Below, in pieces: positions 12,871 through 23,700 of a stretch of DNA of 64,000 bases. The stretch spans positions 1,674,001 to 1,738,000 of the forward strand of contig OZ218960.1 in NCBI GenBank assembly GCA_965112735.1, read 5' to 3'. The notes beneath the pieces are model-generated. The model saw only the letters and a list, made by a program, of their open reading frames with translations. It ran no database searches and had not been told where the DNA came from. The translations under genes were made by a program, and so were the position numbers. This DNA comes from Phaeosaccion multiseriatum (lineage: Eukaryota > Protista > Ochrophyta, other classes). How positions within the stretch are numbered: the first letter of the stretch is position 1; every line of letters begins with the position of its first letter.

Positions 12871-13148
12871 ACGGTCGACGGTCGGCAGAAAGGGGAAAGG
12901 AAGTGTGAGTGTAAGTTTGATGGCCTTATGTTTATGTGGATCGGGGGGAATAGGCCCATTCTTATCGTGTGACAAAAATGGTCATCCAATTTCCTTTTTC
13001 GGGAAAAAAAGGAAATCGCCTACGCGGATTAGTGGGGGAGTAGGATGGACTCCCCCCCGCGTTGGAACCTCGATAGGTCCCCGGCGCCTTACGTCTCTGA
13101 GGACTGCGCTGGGGCGGGCTCCAATTTCGTTGCTAAAAAAGTACCTCC

Positions 13149-13830
13149 TTGCCCCACCAACAGGTCAGGATGCTGACGGCCGCCCCGACCTTGCGCTCCC
13201 AGAGCTCGCGATCTTAAATACGGTGTTGTTTTGACCCCGTCGCAGTCTCAATGGGTTGCTCCGGTGCTGGGACGGCGCCCGCTCCTGCAGTGCCGTGTGG
13301 CACCTGGGGCCTAAGCCTAACTAAAACTGCACTACTCCGCTAGCTACAATACTTGCCCCCACCAACAGGTCAGGATGCTGACGCGCCGTCTCCCCGCATC
13401 CCGGTGTGTGTGTGTGCGGGGACGGCGCCCGCTCCTGCAGTGCCGTGTGGCACCTGTGTGAGTGGGTGTGTGGGGGGGCTAATAGCCTACACTACTCCGC
13501 TACAATACATGATGCAGACGGCCGCGCTTGCTTGACGACCTGGGGGGTGGATTGCACGTGACAGCGGAGCACCGGATAAGTCAGTCGTCCGTCGTCTGTC
13601 GTCCGGCTCCGCAGGCAGCATGGCCTGGCGTGGCTGCGTGCTCTCGAATGCTACTACACACGACTCCAGCCACTCTTCCGATAGCTTCTTACCTCGTGGT
13701 CGGTGAAGGCGGCGGAGGGGGAGGAGGAGCCTAACGGCCGCACTTGACGACCTGGGGGGTGGATTGCACGTGACACAGTGGGGCACGGGATGAGTCAGTC
13801 GTCCGTCGTTTGTCGTGGGCAGCCTGCCCT
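13149..13830. repeat. Staggered direct duplications in the left subterminal region of the element
   Basis: CCACCAACAGGTCAGGATGCTGACG at ~13154 and ~13359; GGGACGGCGCCCGCTCCTGCAGTGCCGTGTGGCACCTG at ~13269 and ~13418; CTTGACGACCTGGGGGGTGGATTGCACGTGACA at ~13531 and ~13743. Confidence 0.85.
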
Positions 13831-14430
13831 CCGCCCGCAGCATGGCGTACACACACAGAGACAAAGTAGGACTACTAACCCCCGCCCCCCCCCCCGGCCT
13901 GCGTGCTGGAGTGCTACACACGACTCGAAGCTCACGACACGACAGGCAGACGACTGCCCCGGCTCCGCAGCGCTCACGACAGACTGCCCTCCGCCCGCAG
14001 CTCCGCATGGCGTAAATACACACACAGAGAGAGAGACAAGTAGGAATATTCACCCCACCCCCTCCCCGGCCTGCGTGCTGGAGTGCTACACACGACTCTA
14101 AGCTGCGGAGCTGCGGGCGGAGGGCAGTCTTGCTCCACAGCGCTCACGACAGACTGCCCTCCGCCCGCAGCTCCGCATGGCGTAAATACACACACAGAGA
14201 GAGACACAAGTAGGAATATTCACTCCACCCCCTCCCCGGCCTGCGTGCTGGAGTGCTACACACGACTCTAAGCTGCGGAGCTGCGGGCGGAGGGCAGTCT
14301 TGCTCCACAGCGCTCACGACAGACTGCCCTCCGCCCGCAGCTCCGCATGGCATAAATACACACACAGAGAGAGACACAAGTAGGAATATTCACCCCCTTC
14401 CCCGGCCTGCGTGCTGGAGTGCTACACTCA
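13824..14430. repeat. 170-bp tandem repeat (~3.5 units) containing a perfect 27-bp inverted repeat
   Basis: Near-identical units offset by 170 nt (ORFs 13974..14207 and 14144..14377 are near copies). Arms at 14104-14130 / 14151-14177 and 14274-14300 / 14321-14347. Confidence 0.9.
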
Positions 14431-14639
14431 TTCCCGTGGCTCACCTCGTGCTCCTCCTCCTCTCCTCCTTGTGAACTGAGTGGTGTGGGTGCATGCCCTC
14501 CCAACAAACTTCAAGGGTTCGAATTGAGAGGACGTGTTCACTTATTACGTAACGAAGTTAAGTAAGTAAGCAATTTCTTGATGGAAGAAGTAAGGCTCGG
14601 ACCCATGCGGGGAAAGGGTTACATGGAAGTAAACGAAAT

Positions 14640-17600
14640 AGATATTTTAGCCGGACACACATGCCGGTGTCCCTGGAGGAGAGAGGCGAAGACGAGGATA
14701 GTACAGTACATTTACAAGTACAGCGGAAGGCGAGGAGAAGAATGGCCCCTCCGACCTGCCCCCTCGCCTTCTGCGCCCCCCGCTTCTTCCACCTCCTGTC
14801 GTCTCCGCTGCCGTCGGGTGGGTAAAACGCACCCTCGCTGGAGTCAGACGAGCCAGGGCCGTCTTCGCTTCTTCGTTGCTCTCCCCCCCCCCCCCTGTCC
14901 TTGTCCGCTTGCCGCTCCCGCCGCTTGTACTTCTTTGCCGCTTTGGCACCGTTGCCCCCCTTCCCGGCCGCGTCCGCGAGTGCGACAGTGCATCTCCCTG
15001 GCCTTTCGCTGCTGCTGCTGCTGCTGCTGCCATTGCTGCCACTGCTACTGCTGCTGCTGCTGCCGATGCTGCCCATGCTGCGGCCGCATCGCCTTCCCCT
15101 GCCCCCTTTCTTCCTATGGCCAGGGCAGGGAAGGGTAGAGGTGCATGGGCAGGGCAGCGGGAAAGGCAAAGAAACAGGGCAGGGAGGGAGGGCAGAGGAT
15201 GAGGGAGAGGGAGAGGGGCAGAGGGAGAGGCACAAATCAAACTCACTCACCTTCTCACTAACTTACTCACTCGCTCACCATCTGACTTACGGCACTCCCT
15301 CCCTCCCTCTCTCATTGCGGAGTTACTCACCAAGGGGCGCAGGAGCGAGACTGCATGACACACGGTCGTGTGGAGACAGGGGGAATGGTCTGTGACAGCG
15401 AGCAGGTGTCCGGTGGGGACATGAGGCTACCTGTGTTGCTGTAACGCCAACAGGTGGTGCTCTCAGGGAGGGAGGGGGGGAGAGGGAGAGGAGGGAAAAG
15501 TTTTCCCTCAGTCACTCAGTCACTCACTCATCACCCACTCACGCACCCACCGACCCACCCAAGCACCCACTCAATCCGTCGCTCTCCTTGCCCCCCCCCC
15601 CCACGCCGTCGTTGTCCCCCAGGGCTCTTCCTCGGCGAAGCCGTCCCCCTCCTCCTCCGCTTGCCGAGCTCCCCTCCTCCTCCTCCTCCTCCTGCTCCAC
15701 GTGTGTGACCCTCCACCCCCTCCGCTGTAGTCATCATCATCATCATCGTCGTCGTCGTCGTACTCATCGCTCTGGCTACCCTCCAAGGACCTCTCCATTC
15801 GAAGTCATCGTCGAGGTAACGGTTGAGGTTTAGGTTTCCACTTCCCCCGCCCCTCCTATCACTGAGTCTCCTCTTCCCACCCTGCGGCTGCTGCCCCCCT
15901 GCTAGTAGAAGGGTCGCCCCCAACTCCTCCTCCTCCTCCTCCTCCGCCGCCGCCGCCGCCGCCGCCGCCGCCTGTGCCCTTCTCCTCCTCCACCGCGCAT
16001 GTTGCCCCCTCCTCCACTCCGCCCCTCCGTTCTCTTGGCCAAATAGCGCCCCGTCTCCGCATCCACCAAGTGAATCCTCACCATAGGCTTCACTATTCGC
16101 GAGTCCATTCCATGCGACTCAATTCCCCCGACCTTGAGCGTGATGACATCATTTGGGCCACATTGGGGTGGTGCGTGTCCACCTCCTCCACCTCGCCCAC
16201 CTCCTCCACCTCGTCCATTCTCCTGTGCCTCTCGCCTCCGCTAAAGCCACGGACAGACCCGTCTGCTTCTGTTCTTCCCCTTCCTCTCCTTTCTCTAGAT
16301 GAGCAGAGACTGCCATCACAGGTCCATTCCAGTGATGACGGTTGGGGTCGCAACCCCATTCTGGTGAATGGTCCTGTCCGCCACGAAAGGGGCAAAGACT
16401 TGATACGCGGCGTCGTCAAGCATTCACATGAGTGATTGCTGCTCGAAGGCTCTTCGTCTCTCGTTTAGGCTCTGCCCAGCTTGAGCCAAGGCCGACAGCG
16501 GTGAGCTGACGACACTGTACGGGAGGGAAGGGGAGGGGGAGGGACGAGAGGGAGGGAGGAATTGATGCATGGGCTCAGGTCACGACAAGAGCAAGACAAG
16601 CAGCAACAGCAGCCGGTGGTGATACAGCAGGAGAGTAATCACAGATGACAGCAAACACACGCACCTATCGAGCAGGAGAGTGGATAGCCCAACACGGCCT
16701 GCCGCCCCCCCCCAGGGGTGGAGGCATGGGTACCGTCGCTCGCCGTCGTTCTTCTCGTCCTGCCCGTGCTGCTACTACGACTGGCGCGGCTGTGGCTGCT
16801 CCTGCTGTGCCTACTGCTTGTGCTTTTCCTCTTGCTGCCTCCTGCATCACCGTCTTCGTCGTTTACGTTTCCGCCCCCGCCCCCCTCTTCGTCACCCCCT
16901 CGCCGAATGGGCTTTCCCTAAGCATCGACTTGCTCGCCCTGATGGTCTGAGTCGTCGGAGCTCACCGCGGAACAATCCGACGAGGAGCTGTCGGACTGCA
17001 AGGGGCGGAGGCCCCCCGCCTTGCTCTGGACACACAGGACAGAGAGGGAGGGGAGGGGAGGGGAGGAGGGGAGGGAGGGAAAGAGGGCGGGGGGGGGGGG
17101 AGGGGAGGGAAAGAGGAAGGGAAGGGGCGAGGAAAGACAGATGGCTCGGGAGGTAAGTAAGCACGGAAGGGATGGAAGGGAGCGACCTCCACTTTTGCGC
17201 ACTCTGCTCTTCCCAGCCTTTGTCCCAGCTATCCTAACCACCGCCGTCTGGATAGCTTCTTCCCGGGCACTTTACCTCCCTCCCTCCGTCTCTCTTACCT
17301 TTGTCTTCTTAAGCACTATTTGCTTCCCTGCAAGGAGGCGCGAGCGCAGGCCTACCCGGGCTTTCGAGTCGCCTCACCACGGTGCCCCCCCCCCCCCCGG
17401 CCCACTCTCCTCCGCTGCAGAAGCACCACTGTCCAGGGTAGCCTCGGTGAGCTGAGCAGCGCTCGTGTGTGAGTCGTCGTCGGAGACGCCCTCCACCCCC
17501 TCCCCGCCCAGTCTCGCTCTGCTCCTACTGCCTGCCCCTACTCCTACTGCGACTGGGGCTGCGACTGCTCCTGTTGCTGCTTGTCCTCTTCATGGTACTG

Positions 17601-18460
17601 GTGTGGCTATTGTTGCCATTGCCACTGCTCTGACGGCCGCGGCCGCCGGACATGTTCCCTCGAAGGAAGCCTCTACCCTTGCTGAGAAGGGAGGTCTTAC
17701 GTCTTGTACGGAGTGTGATGGGCATCGTCTTCGTGGGCTTCGCGGTCGTCGTCGTGGTCGTTCCAGCCGCCTCTACCACGCCCCCCTGCACGTGTTGGCC
17801 ATTCGAGGGCGGAGGAAATGAGAACGAGGGCACATGAAAAGGGAAAGAGAGCTAGGGCCCTGCTTTCACACATCACACAGTGAAGAAAGGCGGCAGGTGG
17901 GAATACGCCTCCGTCCCCCACCCTCGCGGTGACTGTGACTTTCGCCTGCCTGCTCCAAGGTTGAAGCTCACTTCGGGGCATCCGTCGGAGGTAGCGGGTC
18001 GGTAAGTAGCCCCCATGTGTGTTCGAGGGTGGACGACATACAGAAAGCACTTCAATGCCTCGGCTTACTCGTTGCGCGCTCTCCTCCGCGCCTTGGACGA
18101 TGAGACCCTCCCCTGCAAGCTCTTCTCGTCGTCCTCGTCATCCTCCTTTATGCTCTGATACTGGCGGTCGTTGCTGCCTTCAGAGGCGTCCTCGGACGAC
18201 TCCAGCGACACTTCCCCCATCCTCCTCCTTGGCCCCTTCTGCTACAGCTTGGGCTTGAGAGCGGCTGGAGTCGGCTGCGCTTCAGAGCCACCATCCTCAA
18301 TGGAGAGAGGGGGCACGACCTTGCCAGCGTCATCTGCAGGTGGAACGTGCTCGAGACTGCTCGTCCTGCTGGTGGGCCTGGTGCCTCTTGCCGTAGCACC
18401 CTCCGCCTCGTCCAGAGCAGGTCCAGTCTCTCTTTCTTTTGATGATCGATGATCTGGATC
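14640..18460 (-). pseudogene. Captured, intron-containing pseudogene fragments, including a jouberin (AHI1)-like C2-domain N-terminal part
   Basis: DVITLKVGGIESHGMDSRIVKPMVRIHLVDAETGRYLAK (16150-16034) and TIPPVSTRPCVMQSRSCAPW (15389-15331, followed by GTGAGT) resemble AHI1 HPMVKIHVVDEHTGQYVKK and YILPIMTQP..K....PEW from memory. Several GT-AG-bounded exons. In-frame stops at 18242, 16918, 16424, 16316, 16295 and 16241. Confidence 0.6.
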
Positions 18461-18535
18461 TGCGGTGGAGAAAAAATATGTCAATGACCGTTTCGTTTTT
18501 TTTTTTTAACTTGTACCGCCCTCCGGACGGGCGAG

Positions 18536-20133
18536 ATGGATGGCCGTCCGGGAAACGTGCTGAGGACCATGACCATGATGAGGCGCCTCATCCCTGTCTT
18601 GTGTGATGATACCAACGTCGGCCTCTCGTTGAGGATTCCGTCAGCAGCGGAGGTGTGTTGCTGCAATGGGTTGCTCACTTGGCTGGTGCACCTGGGCACA
18701 ATAAAGGTTTCGATGGCCACCGCCTTCGAAGACCTGGCGAAATTAGCGGAACACCACTCCTTCCTGTGACGCTGGAGCGCTTCATGTTGACTTCATCTGG
18801 CAGCATGTGAGGCCCTTCAAGCAAGGCTGACAGAGCAACTGTGAGTAGGCCGAGGGCCTTTTTTCGAGTTGATGTGTGCAGTGCGCTGCTTTGGACTGCG
18901 TGCGTGGACGTGGGCGCGCGTAACCCCGTATCGATTCCTTTTTCATCTGCTCTCCTCACTCCTGTCGTTGCTCACTGTGAATCCTCCTGCCCACGCCGCT
19001 CTCCGCCAGCCCTCGGGCAGCACCTGGGACAGTCAGGTGGACCTTCCGCATCTCCTGGACGAATTCGAACAGGCCGCATTGGTGATGGCAAAGGACTACC
19101 TCTTCAAGCCAGAGTATTGTCCTTGACGATGAGGTGAACGCATGTCGGGGACCGTAAAATGAAGGCGGCGAGGGAAGCAGGGAGGGCCGCTGCAACGACG
19201 CGCTCGCCCACAGTATTTTCCGCATGTACCTCGCCGTCAGGTTAGTGTATGTGGGTACCTTTGTGTGCGGAAGGCGCACTCGGTAGAGGCGGTCACTGAG
19301 GAAAAGGGGGGGGGAGGGGCTGAGTGACACAAGAAGGGGAGGGGGGGAGCGGAGTTTTTGTGGGCGCCGTGTCCTTTGCCCGAGTGTTCCGACTCCATAC
19401 ACCCTCCGACTCTCGTCCCATCGGTTGGGAGAGGACCAAGATCGGCGCGTAGCCGTGCTTGCTGACTGACAGGCTGCTGCCGGCCGTTGTGGGTGGTGGA
19501 GACCTGGAGCGAGTGCTCTTCTGCCTTGACCGTTGCGTCTTCAAGACCCTCTGCGAGAAGAAGAGCGCGGGGATCATCACCATCGGCGGGAAGAATCTCC
19601 GTGCCCACCCCCTCGTCGGCGCGTCTGCCGTGAGTGCAATGAGAGCTGCGTGTTGCCCAAAACAGGCCTTTGTGGTCGACGACTATCCACAACATGGCTC
19701 CAACGTCGTAGACAGCGCGGCGGCGAGGTGGTCGCCTGTGGGCGTGACCCAGAAGTGGAAGAAAGGAGAGACCAAGCACTTACGGTTCCTTCTCCGCTTG
19801 CCGCCAGGCGAGCAGTCACCGGAGGCACTCAACACTTGGGCTGCCGTCTAGCTCACGGAGGGTGAGGTGCAAGAACACGTCGTGATACTTCCCCCTGTTA
19901 GGGCTGGACGAACAGCCAGCCTGTACCGCCGCTCTTGCGAGACGAATTCAAATATGGCCCATCTCGCCCGGATTCGACTTTTCTTGGTACTTCCTGTGAA
20001 TTTCCAGGGTGGTGTGCCCCGGAAATTTTGGTACAGATTTGAGCACACATCTGGGAGCATATGGAACTGTTTTCGGTTTTCGGTAGCTATCACAGTCCGC
20101 CAAAACAAAGCATACACGTCTGCCTCGCCCTGA
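18536..20133 (+). pseudogene. Degenerate, internally deleted DDE/DDD transposase, divergent piggyBac-like
   Basis: Conceptual translation across frameshifts, stops and probable introns (donors at 18841 and 19241): TWDSQVDLPHLLDEFEQAALVMAKDYLFKP / IVLDDE (19116-19133) / EGRCNDALAHSIFRMYLAVR / VLFCLDR (D at 19528) / HPLVG / FVVDDYP. Stops at 19155, 19450 and 19849. The third catalytic acidic residue and a Cys-rich tail were not found. Confidence 0.55.
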
Positions 20134-20652
20134 CTCCCATCCACCCCGATGGATTCCCGATAATCCCACCAGTCCCCCCGGGCCGGGCGGGTGGGGAAGC
20201 TTAGGCTGTCGCTGCCAGCCCTTTCCGCGCGGTGAACTGCTGGGCTGCCCCTTTGCTGTCCTTACCGCGCTGAGCTCTTCGGCACTTGCTACAACTCTTG
20301 GGACGCTGAACTCGCGTCGCCTCCTCTTTCCACAGTAGTGGTTGCTTAGGGCTGACTCCTTGTACCCCTCGATACCCCGGCGGGGTGAGCCTCGTACGTA
20401 GGCCTTTGGGCCTTTGCGTCAGTCGACACGCATGCCCCTGCCTCCTAAGCGTCCGTTTTCTCTTTCCAGCTGTCGACATTGTACACTTCCTTCCCTGCTC
20501 GAGAAAGGTAGTTTTTCGATACCATCGGCTCATAAACTCGCTCTACTCGACCTTTTACCTTTTGCCTTTTTTAGCACAAAAAAAAATGAAAAAACACGAT
20601 AAGAACGGCCCTTAAAGTGTAAACCGCAAACAGAGGAGGGGGGCAAGGGTAA

Positions 20653-20666
20653 TTATATATATATAG
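20653..20666 (+). promoter_or_regulatory. TATA-like (TA)n element ~85 nt upstream of the legumain ATG
   Basis: TTATATATATATAG in otherwise GC-rich DNA, between the transposon end (20611) and ATG 20747. Positional inference only. Confidence 0.3.
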
Positions 20667-20746: not shown

Positions 20747-23700
20747 ATGAAGGCCTCTTGTAGAGGAGGTGCTGGCGCCGCCCTGCTCCTGTCTTCGCTC
20801 GTTGCCAGTCCAGCCTTCGCGAAGCCTACCCTTGAGGCTCATGGGGGGGAGAATTGGGCAGTTGTAGTGAGCGGGAGCGGCGGCTTTGCGAACTATCGCC
20901 ACCAGGTCGGTGAAAACCTGAGAGAGAAAATTAATGCGGCACGCTCTTCCATGACGCATGTCCCACTCTACTTGCACCCCCCCAACTCCTCCTCCTTTCC
21001 TCTTCTATTTCTTGTCACCTTGCATTCCCAGGCCGATGTTTGCCACGCGTATCATATTCTCCGACGCAACGGTATGTTTTAAAGCCAAGGTTACCGAAGC
21101 AAATCACCACCCTTTGTTTCGCTCTACCGGGGGTCGCGAAGGAGGAACAGGCAGACAAGTGCAATGCTGGTGCTGTACCACCAACTGCTGCTCCTCCTAC
21201 TCCTGCTACTGCTTCCTCACTTTCTCTTGTCCATCCTCCTCCGACCTTGCTTCGATCCACCCACTAACAACCTCCCCCCCCCCCCCCATGAACCTCGCTC
21301 AGGCCTCAGTGAGGAGCGGATCATTTTGATGAGCATCGACGACGCCGCGCACAACGAGTTCAATCCTGTTCCGGGCACCCTGTTTAACAAGCCTACTAAG
21401 CAGGGCATCCCCGGGTGGGTACGAGGAGGGGTTGTGTAGTGCGAGGAGGGGTTGGTTTGTGTTTTGTTATCCTACGAAGTATCATGTTTGTTGCTATCTG
21501 CTGCCATCCCCTTCCCTCTCCCCTCCCCGGTCCAATGTGCGGTTCGATGTATCGAGTGTGTTATGGCTGCCCCTCTCCTTCTGACGTCCTTCGTTCCTAC
21601 CGTAGCGTTATTTTTTTTTTTTTTTTTTTCTCTCCTTCTGACTGCCTCACTGACTCAGTGACTCACTCACTCACTGACTGACTGCCCCTCAGCCTGACTG
21701 ACTGACTGACTGACTGACTGGCTGACTCACTGACTGACTGACCGACTCACTCACTCACTCACTCACTCACTCCCTGACTGACTGACTGACTGACTGACTG
21801 ACTGACTTGACAAACTGACGTGACAAACTGACTTGACTGACTGACTGACTCATTGAATGACTGACTGACTGACTGACTGAGACTGACTGACTGACTGACT
21901 GCTGACTGACTGACTGACTGACTGACTGACTGACTGACTGACTGACTGACTGACTGAATCATTGACTGACTGACTGACTGACTGACTCATCGACTGACTG
22001 AATGATTGACCGACTGACTAACTGACTTGACTGAGTGACTGACTGACTGACGGACTCCCTGACTCACTGATTAAATAACTGACTTACCATCAGATACAAT
22101 GTGTACGAGGGCTGTGAGGAGAACATCGACTATCGAGGAGACGATGTAACGGCGGGTAAGTATAGCAGTGGGCGAGCGAGGGAGGGAGGGAGGGAGGGAG
22201 GACGGTATCTCCACTCTCGCCCCTTAGCCCCTCACTCACTCACCCACCCCCTCCCTCCCTCCCTCGCTCACCCACGCACTCATTTGCCAGAAAATTTCCT
22301 TGCCGTTCTACGGGGAGACGAAGAGACAACAGAAGGGAAGCCCGTCCTTCGGAGCGGACCAGACGATAGGTGGGTAGGTACATCACTGCCGCTTGCTCAC
22401 TTGCTCACTCACTTGCTCACTTGCTCACTCACTCACTCACTCACTCACTGGCCCACTACTCATTCGCTTGCTCACTCACTTTCCTCCACCTCCCCCCCCC
22501 CCTCCTCCTCCTCCTCCTCCTCCTCCCACCCCCAGAGTGTTTATATACTTTGCTGACCACGGTGCCCCTGGCCTCATCGCCATGCCGAGCGGGAGTCCCG
22601 TGTATGCTCAGGACCTGCTTGAGGCCCTTGAGTACATGGAGGAAGAGGCCACATATAGAGACCTTGTGTTCTATCTAGAGGCCTGCGAGTCAGGTGAATG
22701 GGTGGGGTGTATAGGGACCATTCAGGACAGAAGGGGGGGGGTGTCAGGACTTGGGGGGTGGGGGGTGTCAGGACAGAGGATGGTTGGATGTAAGGATAAA
22801 GGGTGGGTTTGGTGGGTGTCAGGACATCGGGACCCCCCCACCACCACCAACACTCACTACCACCATCACTACAGTATCTATTCATCCATCCTCCACCCGC
22901 CCCTTCTGGCCCCTTCTGGGTACTAAAACCTCTCCTTCCGAGCACTACCATAACCATCCCTTCCGGGTCCTTCACGTGCTTGCCCCCCCCCCCCCCCCTG
23001 CAGGGAGCATGTTCGAAGGCCTGCTACCGAACACCACACATGTCTTCGCCACCACAGCCGCCAACCCTTCCGAGAGCAGCTTCGGTACTTACTGCGGGGC
23101 CGACGCCACCGTGGATGGGGTGGACATCGGCTCTTGTCTAGGGGATCTATATAGGTTGGTGATCCATGTATCAATAGATGGAATACATCAGTATATGTGT
23201 GTATGGGTGGGGGTGGGGCAATGGGGGTGGATGGGGCGAGCAAGAAGGCAAGTCTTGTTTGCTTTACTCAGTGCGTTCCCTCTCCCCTCTCAACCCCACC
23301 CCCCCTCCCCCTTGTCTCTCCTATCTCCCCTCTCCGCCCTCTGCTCTTCCCACTCCGCATGGGGCAAATGACACCATATATTGCCATCTGTATGATGCCA
23401 TGTATTGCCCATCTTATGTGGGCATTGCAGCGTGTCTTGGATGGAGGATGCGGACCAGCCCGACAGATTCCATTTCGAGAGGTACGTAAGTAGGCACTCA
23501 AGGGGCTTTGGAAGCATGTCCAAGTTCCCCACACTGACTTCTTATTAGAATGCGTCTGTCCGTCTGTCCGTCCGTCCTTCCTTTGCCTTAGCTCATCCCT
23601 CCCTGGAGTTCCTCTGCTTTACCCCTCCCTCCTGTGCTTTACCTCTACCTCCTCTGCCTTATCTCAAGCGTCCGTCCCTACCATCTGCTCTCCCTCTTCT

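Follow-up and report, generated by a model that had tools for sequence, protein, structure and literature searches.

A putative Pack-type DNA transposon with host-derived cargo in the stramenopile alga Phaeosaccion multiseriatum

The window analysed here is a stretch of 64,000 nucleotides (C11:1674001-1738000, on contig OZ218960.1) from the genome assembly of Phaeosaccion multiseriatum (GCA_965112735.1), and the element in question occupies positions 12953-20611 of this window, between two 18-bp terminal inverted repeats (TIRs). An earlier note, made from the letters of the window alone, had proposed it as a cargo-carrying transposon. Searches of the whole genome (67 Mb in 22 contigs, denoted below by C and a number) lead us to read it, with a probability of about three in four, as a Pack-type, non-autonomous TIR DNA transposon of the cut-and-paste class, with a target site like that of PIF/Harbinger elements and an interior patched together from the host genome. 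The proposal of a cargo-carrying, non-autonomous TIR transposon thus stands, on its paired ends, a second copy on C3, flanks compatible with a 3-bp T-W-A target and a 3.3-kb interior piece derived from a locus on C9. Here we present the evidence for this reading, the explanations that compete with it and the features of the element.

Ends, copies and boundaries of the element

The TIRs at 12953-12970 (+) and 20594-20611 (-) match each other at 16 of 18 positions, as had been stated before. The TIR motif, GGSCCRTTCTTATCGTGT, occurs at just these two places in the window when up to three mismatches are allowed, with a chance expectation of 0.03. The inverted pair is unremarkable when taken alone, given the 118 inverted pairs of at least 14 nt in the 8.6-kb region. 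Genome-wide, the 18-mer end motif yielded 16 matches (up to two mismatches), compared with four for the reversed motif used as control.

A second full copy of the element, 7.5 kb long, lies on the opposite strand of C3 (C3:2620344-2627872) and is 98.5% identical to the first over 7394 aligned sites. When the window was compared with 30 kb of C3, the homology was found to span 12951-20613, i.e., the TIRs and another two matching bases at either end, and the surroundings of the two copies are unrelated beyond these matched ends. The C3 copy has one 170-bp tandem unit fewer (see below) and a small deletion in its right end. The unit has therefore been mobile: the two large copies sit at non-homologous sites, with boundaries within 2 bp of the TIRs.

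The same ends bound a family of 1.6-kb elements with a different interior, represented by three complete, TIR-paired copies and one truncated copy (Table 1), which are 98-99% identical to each other. The termini are thus multi-copy and paired elsewhere in the genome around differing interiors, which is what the earlier note had suggested looking for. BLAST of the 1.6-kb elements against the window element gave no match, and the end region common to both is, by eye, about 28 nt at the left end of the window element. The genome search found no longer, autonomous relative of the 1.6-kb element. Since the large copies and the 1.6-kb family are both diverged by 1-2%, they were probably active at about the same time. 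Regarding the first approximately 350 bp of the window element, older relatives with 76-84% identity are present on C5, C11 and C7. The two ends are different variants, the left one ('GGCCCA') being that of the old relatives and the right one ('GGGCCG') that of the young 1.6-kb family.

The existence of just two large copies, with imperfect target duplications, would agree with a segmental duplication or an ectopic gene conversion in which the inverted ends are coincidental. However, the copy boundaries lie within two bases of the 18-bp motif on both sides, the same motif delimits the elements of a separate family, among which there are perfect 3-bp duplications, and it is found nowhere else in the window. 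Because the boundaries coincide with the ends of a TIR family, we set this explanation aside as having a negligible chance of being correct.

The 1.6-kb elements have further features of their own. TIR-like subterminal repeats are present at +74 and +161, at one end only, and a short tandem repeat lies in the interior. A 193-codon open frame with a Cys/His-rich stretch gave a match resembling zf-RING (E = 0.026, under the Pfam cut-off) and could be another captured gene piece. A word of 50-130 bp at positions 1217-1350 of the element recurs at dozens of loci with 90-100% identity, often as adjacent inverted pairs (e.g., C14:2384330-2385007 and C4:3076023-3076115), and resembles a short palindromic repeat or a mini-element that has nested within this family.

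Origin of the interior

One long piece of the interior, here called the cargo, is a decayed copy of an open reading frame (ORF) on C9. The two are collinear over 3.3 kb in the window and 4.5 kb on C9 (whole-element genome search, local alignment), the breakpoints of the cargo are sharp on both sides, and TIR-like words were not found at the C9 locus. This locus is single-copy and contains an open frame of 1011 codons on the minus strand (C9:2350794-2353826), which appears to be maintained, because 1000 block-shuffled versions of this DNA gave no frame longer than 383 codons. Within the frame, the cargo of the window element is 89.7% identical to C9 and carries 37 indels (23 of them frameshifting) and six in-register stops; between the two large copies the cargo block is 97-100% identical. 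Judged by sequence, the cargo is a defunct duplicate of a coding locus that is single-copy, and its acquisition either long preceded the last transposition or drew on a paralogue that has been lost.

The earlier note had suggested looking for intact parent genes elsewhere, and had taken the minus-strand ORF pieces for pseudo-exons with host-style introns. The latter view does not hold: the C9 counterpart is one uninterrupted frame, so that the gaps between the ORF pieces of the cargo are frameshifts and stops, not introns. The suggested identity as a ciliary gene (Jouberin/AHI1) is unsupported, though not disproved. Neither Pfam nor two word searches, for which the part of the C9 frame that looks conserved was used, gave anything pointing to it; AHI1 is built of WD40 plus SH3, a portion that would lie outside the part searched. 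In Atlas, the C9 frame reached a score of 0.83 to a cluster of the C2 protein domain, which is a lead only. The predicted product of the 1011 codons is mostly of low complexity, rich in Gly, Ser, Arg, Asp and Glu.

To the left of the cargo, the staggered duplications and the 170-bp hairpin repeat described before are both present. The duplications pair 13264-13306 with 13414-13456 (98% identity) and 13561-13602 with 13775-13816 (88%). The hairpin repeat forms an array of 3.4 units, whose perfect 27-nt inverted arms fold as DNA with -42.9 kcal/mol (z = -9.7). The spacer that follows contains an 11-nt TIR-like word in right-end orientation (14738-14748, minus strand), which hints weakly at an earlier internal end.

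To the right of the cargo, the region 18536-20133 had been held to be a decayed plus-strand transposase, a claim that the searches did not bear out. The ORF pieces of the element were queried one by one against protein and domain resources. The Pfam scan, in which E values of up to 1 were accepted, returned nothing on any ORF piece of this region, PF13359 had no match within the window, and in Atlas the plus-strand pieces gave relaxase matches below the recognition threshold. For the 93-residue frame (18488-18766), HMMER found a sole match (E = 1.5e-4) among 1.84 billion representative proteins, and this match is a translated tandem repeat. No family, homologue or sign of constraint was detected for the 130-codon frame at 19459-19851. 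The DNA of this region is made up, mosaic-like, of pieces related to three unrelated low-copy loci on C2, C14 and C3, and the rest is unique to the two large copies. We read 18536-20133 as further captured low-copy DNA.

That these pieces are instead the remains of the element's own transposase, and the element a decayed autonomous transposon, would fit with the ORF pieces all lying on one strand, with the 130-codon frame being open in both copies, and with a 77-aa piece being 64% identical to a part of a 270-codon open frame on C2. The empty protein searches and the mosaic structure argue against it, as do the flanks, which are not TTAA duplications, and we consider it improbable. An assignment of the region to piggyBac in particular was tried and rejected: PF13843 (piggyBac) had no match in the genome, a weak result since the control genomes also gave none, and a TTAA duplication is absent from all five complete copies of the large and 1.6-kb elements.

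The rightmost component is a fragment of an abundant repeat, 'R'. In the window, it stops 53 bp short of the right terminus; on C10, a copy of R abuts the 1.6-kb element at a poly-A run, exactly where the first 42 bp of that element are missing. R may prefer the A-rich subterminal DNA of this TIR family.

Regarding the route by which the cargo was acquired, the identity of the element is not at stake, and one tentative alternative has to be weighed. In an end fusion (macro-transposition), the left end of an older element and the right end of a nearby one of the 1.6-kb type would have come to act together after the inner ends had decayed, the outer ends moving everything between them. This model has been put forward for the Pack-PIF clusters of maize (PMC8903248). 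It is favoured here by the hybrid ends, the left one having old relatives of 80-83% identity and the right one being identical at 18 of 18 positions to that of the 1.6-kb family, and by the word at 14738-14748, which would close a 1.8-kb element. However, this word is marginal (about 0.03 expected inside the element, a rough estimate from motif length), has one mismatch in the C3 copy and shows no subterminal similarity to other ends. Moreover, the interior derives from at least four unrelated sources and not from a single contiguous genomic block; a mosaic from four sources favours several acquisition events. End fusion is held at less than even odds; it would concern only the route, and the preferred reading of a host-patched, non-autonomous transposon is the same with or without it.

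Target site and mobilising enzyme

The earlier note had cautioned that the flanks of the element are not a perfect duplication, and this caution was justified: the window element is flanked by ATA and TTA, and the C3 copy, with TTA and TTT, likewise has one mismatch. Taken over the family, the flanks point to a 3-bp T-W-A target like that of PIF/Harbinger, a superfamily characterised by 3-bp duplications, mostly of TAA, and by an extended target preference (PMC2836001). The duplication is perfect in two of the five complete copies (those on C1 and C8) and mismatched in the other three (C13, window and C3). When single ends and old relatives are included, all 15 termini have an A adjoining the TIR, and 8 of the 15 flank triplets read TTA or TAA. 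Duplications of 1, 2 or 4 bp, or shifted element ends, fitted the five pairs of flanks no better than 3 bp. In each of the three imperfect duplications, the mismatch concerns the outermost base of the triplet, and on C13 and C3 the right end is followed 3' by TTTTA, i.e., a perfect TTA after two extra T's. The imperfect duplications may stem from carry-over of flanking bases at excision.

Helitrons, which have 5'-TC...CTRR-3' ends, lack TIRs and insert between A and T without a duplication, were also considered. The A/T flanks alone would be compatible with them, but the GGSCC...GGSCC ends with 18-bp TIRs and the perfect 3-bp duplications on C1 and C8 do not agree with such elements.

The genome contains two Harbinger-type DDE_Tnp_4 matches that pass the Pfam cut-off (39 bits), each within an open frame of 168 codons. 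These loci, on C1 and C5, are possible sources of the mobilising enzyme for this family.

Putting these data together, we propose that the element, devoid of a transposase of its own, would be mobilised by a trans-acting enzyme with recognition of the ends of about 18 bp, and would duplicate 3 bp on insertion, at T-W-A sites. The mover would probably be a pair of ORF1 and transposase of the PIF/Harbinger type. The interior would be a patchwork of host DNA, comprising the dead 3.3-kb piece from C9, bits related to C2, C14 and C3, and the fragment of the abundant repeat, with the 170-bp hairpin satellite presumably home-grown; the whole unit would have transposed recently, leaving the copies on C11 and C3.

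Several observations weigh against this reading. The family is tiny: besides the two large copies, it comprises four small elements and some relics. One base of the 3-bp duplication is mismatched in both large copies and also in the young C13 element, and with copies diverged by only 1-2% point mutation is no explanation for this. Regarding the cargo, its divergence from C9 of about 10% is far above the 1.5% between copies, so that the true donor may have been a lost paralogue; the open frame is the sole indication that C9 may be an expressed host gene, and for its protein neither a homologue nor a Pfam domain was detected. Regarding the enzyme, an autonomous element with these ends was not found in the genome, and the 15-nt TIR core, searched with up to one mismatch (a setting that leaves more diverged ends outside), is absent near both DDE_Tnp_4 loci.

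As no autonomous element has been linked to the ends, the PIF/Harbinger assignment is held at roughly even odds. A TIR transposon of another superfamily that makes 3-bp duplications (e.g., Zator, Academ, CACTA-like or undescribed) is a less likely but serious candidate: the ends have no Harbinger-type autonomous partner, and one target triplet, TCA, falls outside T-W-A. Against such a superfamily, TTA and TAA dominate the flanks, DDE_Tnp_4 genes are present in the genome, and the ends start with GGSCC, as do those of PIF, Pong and Tourist.

The right neighbour of the element is a multi-exon gene for a Peptidase C13 (legumain/VPE-like) at 20747-23400 (+), whose ATG lies 135 bp past the right end of the element. 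A TATA-like run (20655-20666) is located between the two, which places the element in the promoter region of that gene. On the left, Pfam gave only a weak ankyrin hint. The contrast drawn before between a broken interior and intact flanking genes applies to the interior, in which all coding-like DNA is broken, and to the right-hand gene, which is recognisable; for the left-hand gene there is this hint only. The features of the element and its relatives are summarised in Table 1.

Table 1. Features of the element in the window, of related copies elsewhere in the genome and of candidate enzyme loci
Feature	Position	Strand	Remarks
Left flank triplet ATA	12950-12952		Putative target-site copy
Left TIR, 'GGCCCA' variant	12953-12970	+	Also in C3 copy and old relative C11:727025-727042
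Left terminal module	12953-13310	+	Old relatives C5:1735464-1735642, C11:726764-727042, C7:3362275-3362713
Two staggered local duplications	13148-13816		Periods of ~150 and 214 bp
170-bp tandem array	13849-14427		3.4 units; every junction a hairpin with 27-bp stem
Spacer	14428-15114		In the two large copies only
Cargo	15115-18425	-	Decayed copy of open reading frame at C9:2349613-2354120
Fragment	18515-19207	+	Relative C2:3495018-3495642, 83%; first part of the supposed transposase relic
Fragment (within 18515-19207)	18695-19089	+	Relative C14:2378914-2379315, 79%
Fragment	19416-19532	+	Relative C3:990651-990761, 79%
130-codon frame	19459-19851	+	Open in both large copies, 94% aa identity
Repeat 'R' fragment	20110-20558	+	5'-truncated; abundant ~610-bp repeat, at least 40 copies genome-wide
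Right TIR, 'GGGCCG' variant	20594-20611	-	18/18 identical to end of 1.6-kb family
Right flank triplet TTA	20612-20614		Putative target-site copy
Window element	12953-20611		Flank triplets ATA / TTA, one mismatch
C3 copy	C3:2620344-2627872		Flank triplets (element orientation) TTA / TTT, one mismatch
Complete 1.6-kb element	C1:6057812-6059458		TIR-paired; flank triplets TAA / TAA, perfect
Complete 1.6-kb element	C8:3214943-3216568		TIR-paired; flank triplets TCA / TCA, perfect
Complete 1.6-kb element	C13:2763667-2765233		TIR-paired; flank triplets TTA / TTT, one mismatch
Truncated 1.6-kb element	C10		First 42 bp missing
DDE_Tnp_4 match	C1:5641081-5641368	-	Pfam profile search
DDE_Tnp_4 match	C5:3468142-3468429	+	Pfam profile search

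Relation to known transposons and significance

Pack-TYPE elements, including Pack-PIF of maize, are established in plants (Gisby and Catoni 2022, PMC8903248). The element described here resembles Pack-TYPE, Pack-PIF and Pack-MULE elements in being non-autonomous, with the TIRs of a DNA transposon family and no transposase of its own detected, and in having an interior of host-gene fragments with parents elsewhere, a non-functional cargo, and sister elements that share its ends and differ inside. It differs from them in its host, a stramenopile alga and not a plant, in having no known autonomous partner, and in its cargo, which is one long 3.3-kb piece about 10% off its parent, accompanied by a hairpin satellite and part of a different repeat. 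Compared with the maize Pack-PIF cluster, it is large (7.7 kb versus about 0.5 kb; PMC8903248) and present in two copies only.

The 3-bp duplication with preference for TTA/TAA, the short TIRs starting with GGSCC and the presumed supply of enzymes in trans suggest a likeness to PIF/Harbinger and to the Tourist-like mPing (PMC2836001), and the insertion near a gene start, that of the Peptidase C13 gene, is a further point of likeness. Unlike in PIF/Harbinger, neither a Myb-like ORF1 nor a DDE_Tnp_4 transposase is linked to the ends, and the duplication is imperfect in three of the five complete copies; with their 1.6-7.7 kb, the elements are also far larger than MITEs of the Tourist kind. With piggyBac there is the likeness that the right flank in the window happens to be TTAA, but DDE_Tnp_1_7 gave no signal in the genome or the window, and the ends are unlike the CCC...GGG termini of piggyBac.

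A full-text literature search for papers mentioning Pack-MULEs together with stramenopile algae listed none, which is a limited negative. For annotators, the ORF pieces inside the element are best treated as pseudogene debris and not as genes. The biological effect of a dead cargo in a two-copy element is by itself probably small. In a broader and more speculative interpretation, gene capture of the Pack kind, documented almost only in land plants, would also occur in a stramenopile alga by way of a small, recently active PIF/Harbinger-like family, and the hybrid ends would be a snapshot of capture by fusion of neighbouring elements. Pack-type elements have been seen as a means by which plants duplicate gene fragments and recombine them, and a stramenopile case would mean that such a process also operates outside plants. 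With two near-identical large copies, young sister elements, an intact parent and two end variants, the family offers a tractable case for studying the uptake of host DNA by such elements and the enzyme behind their movement.

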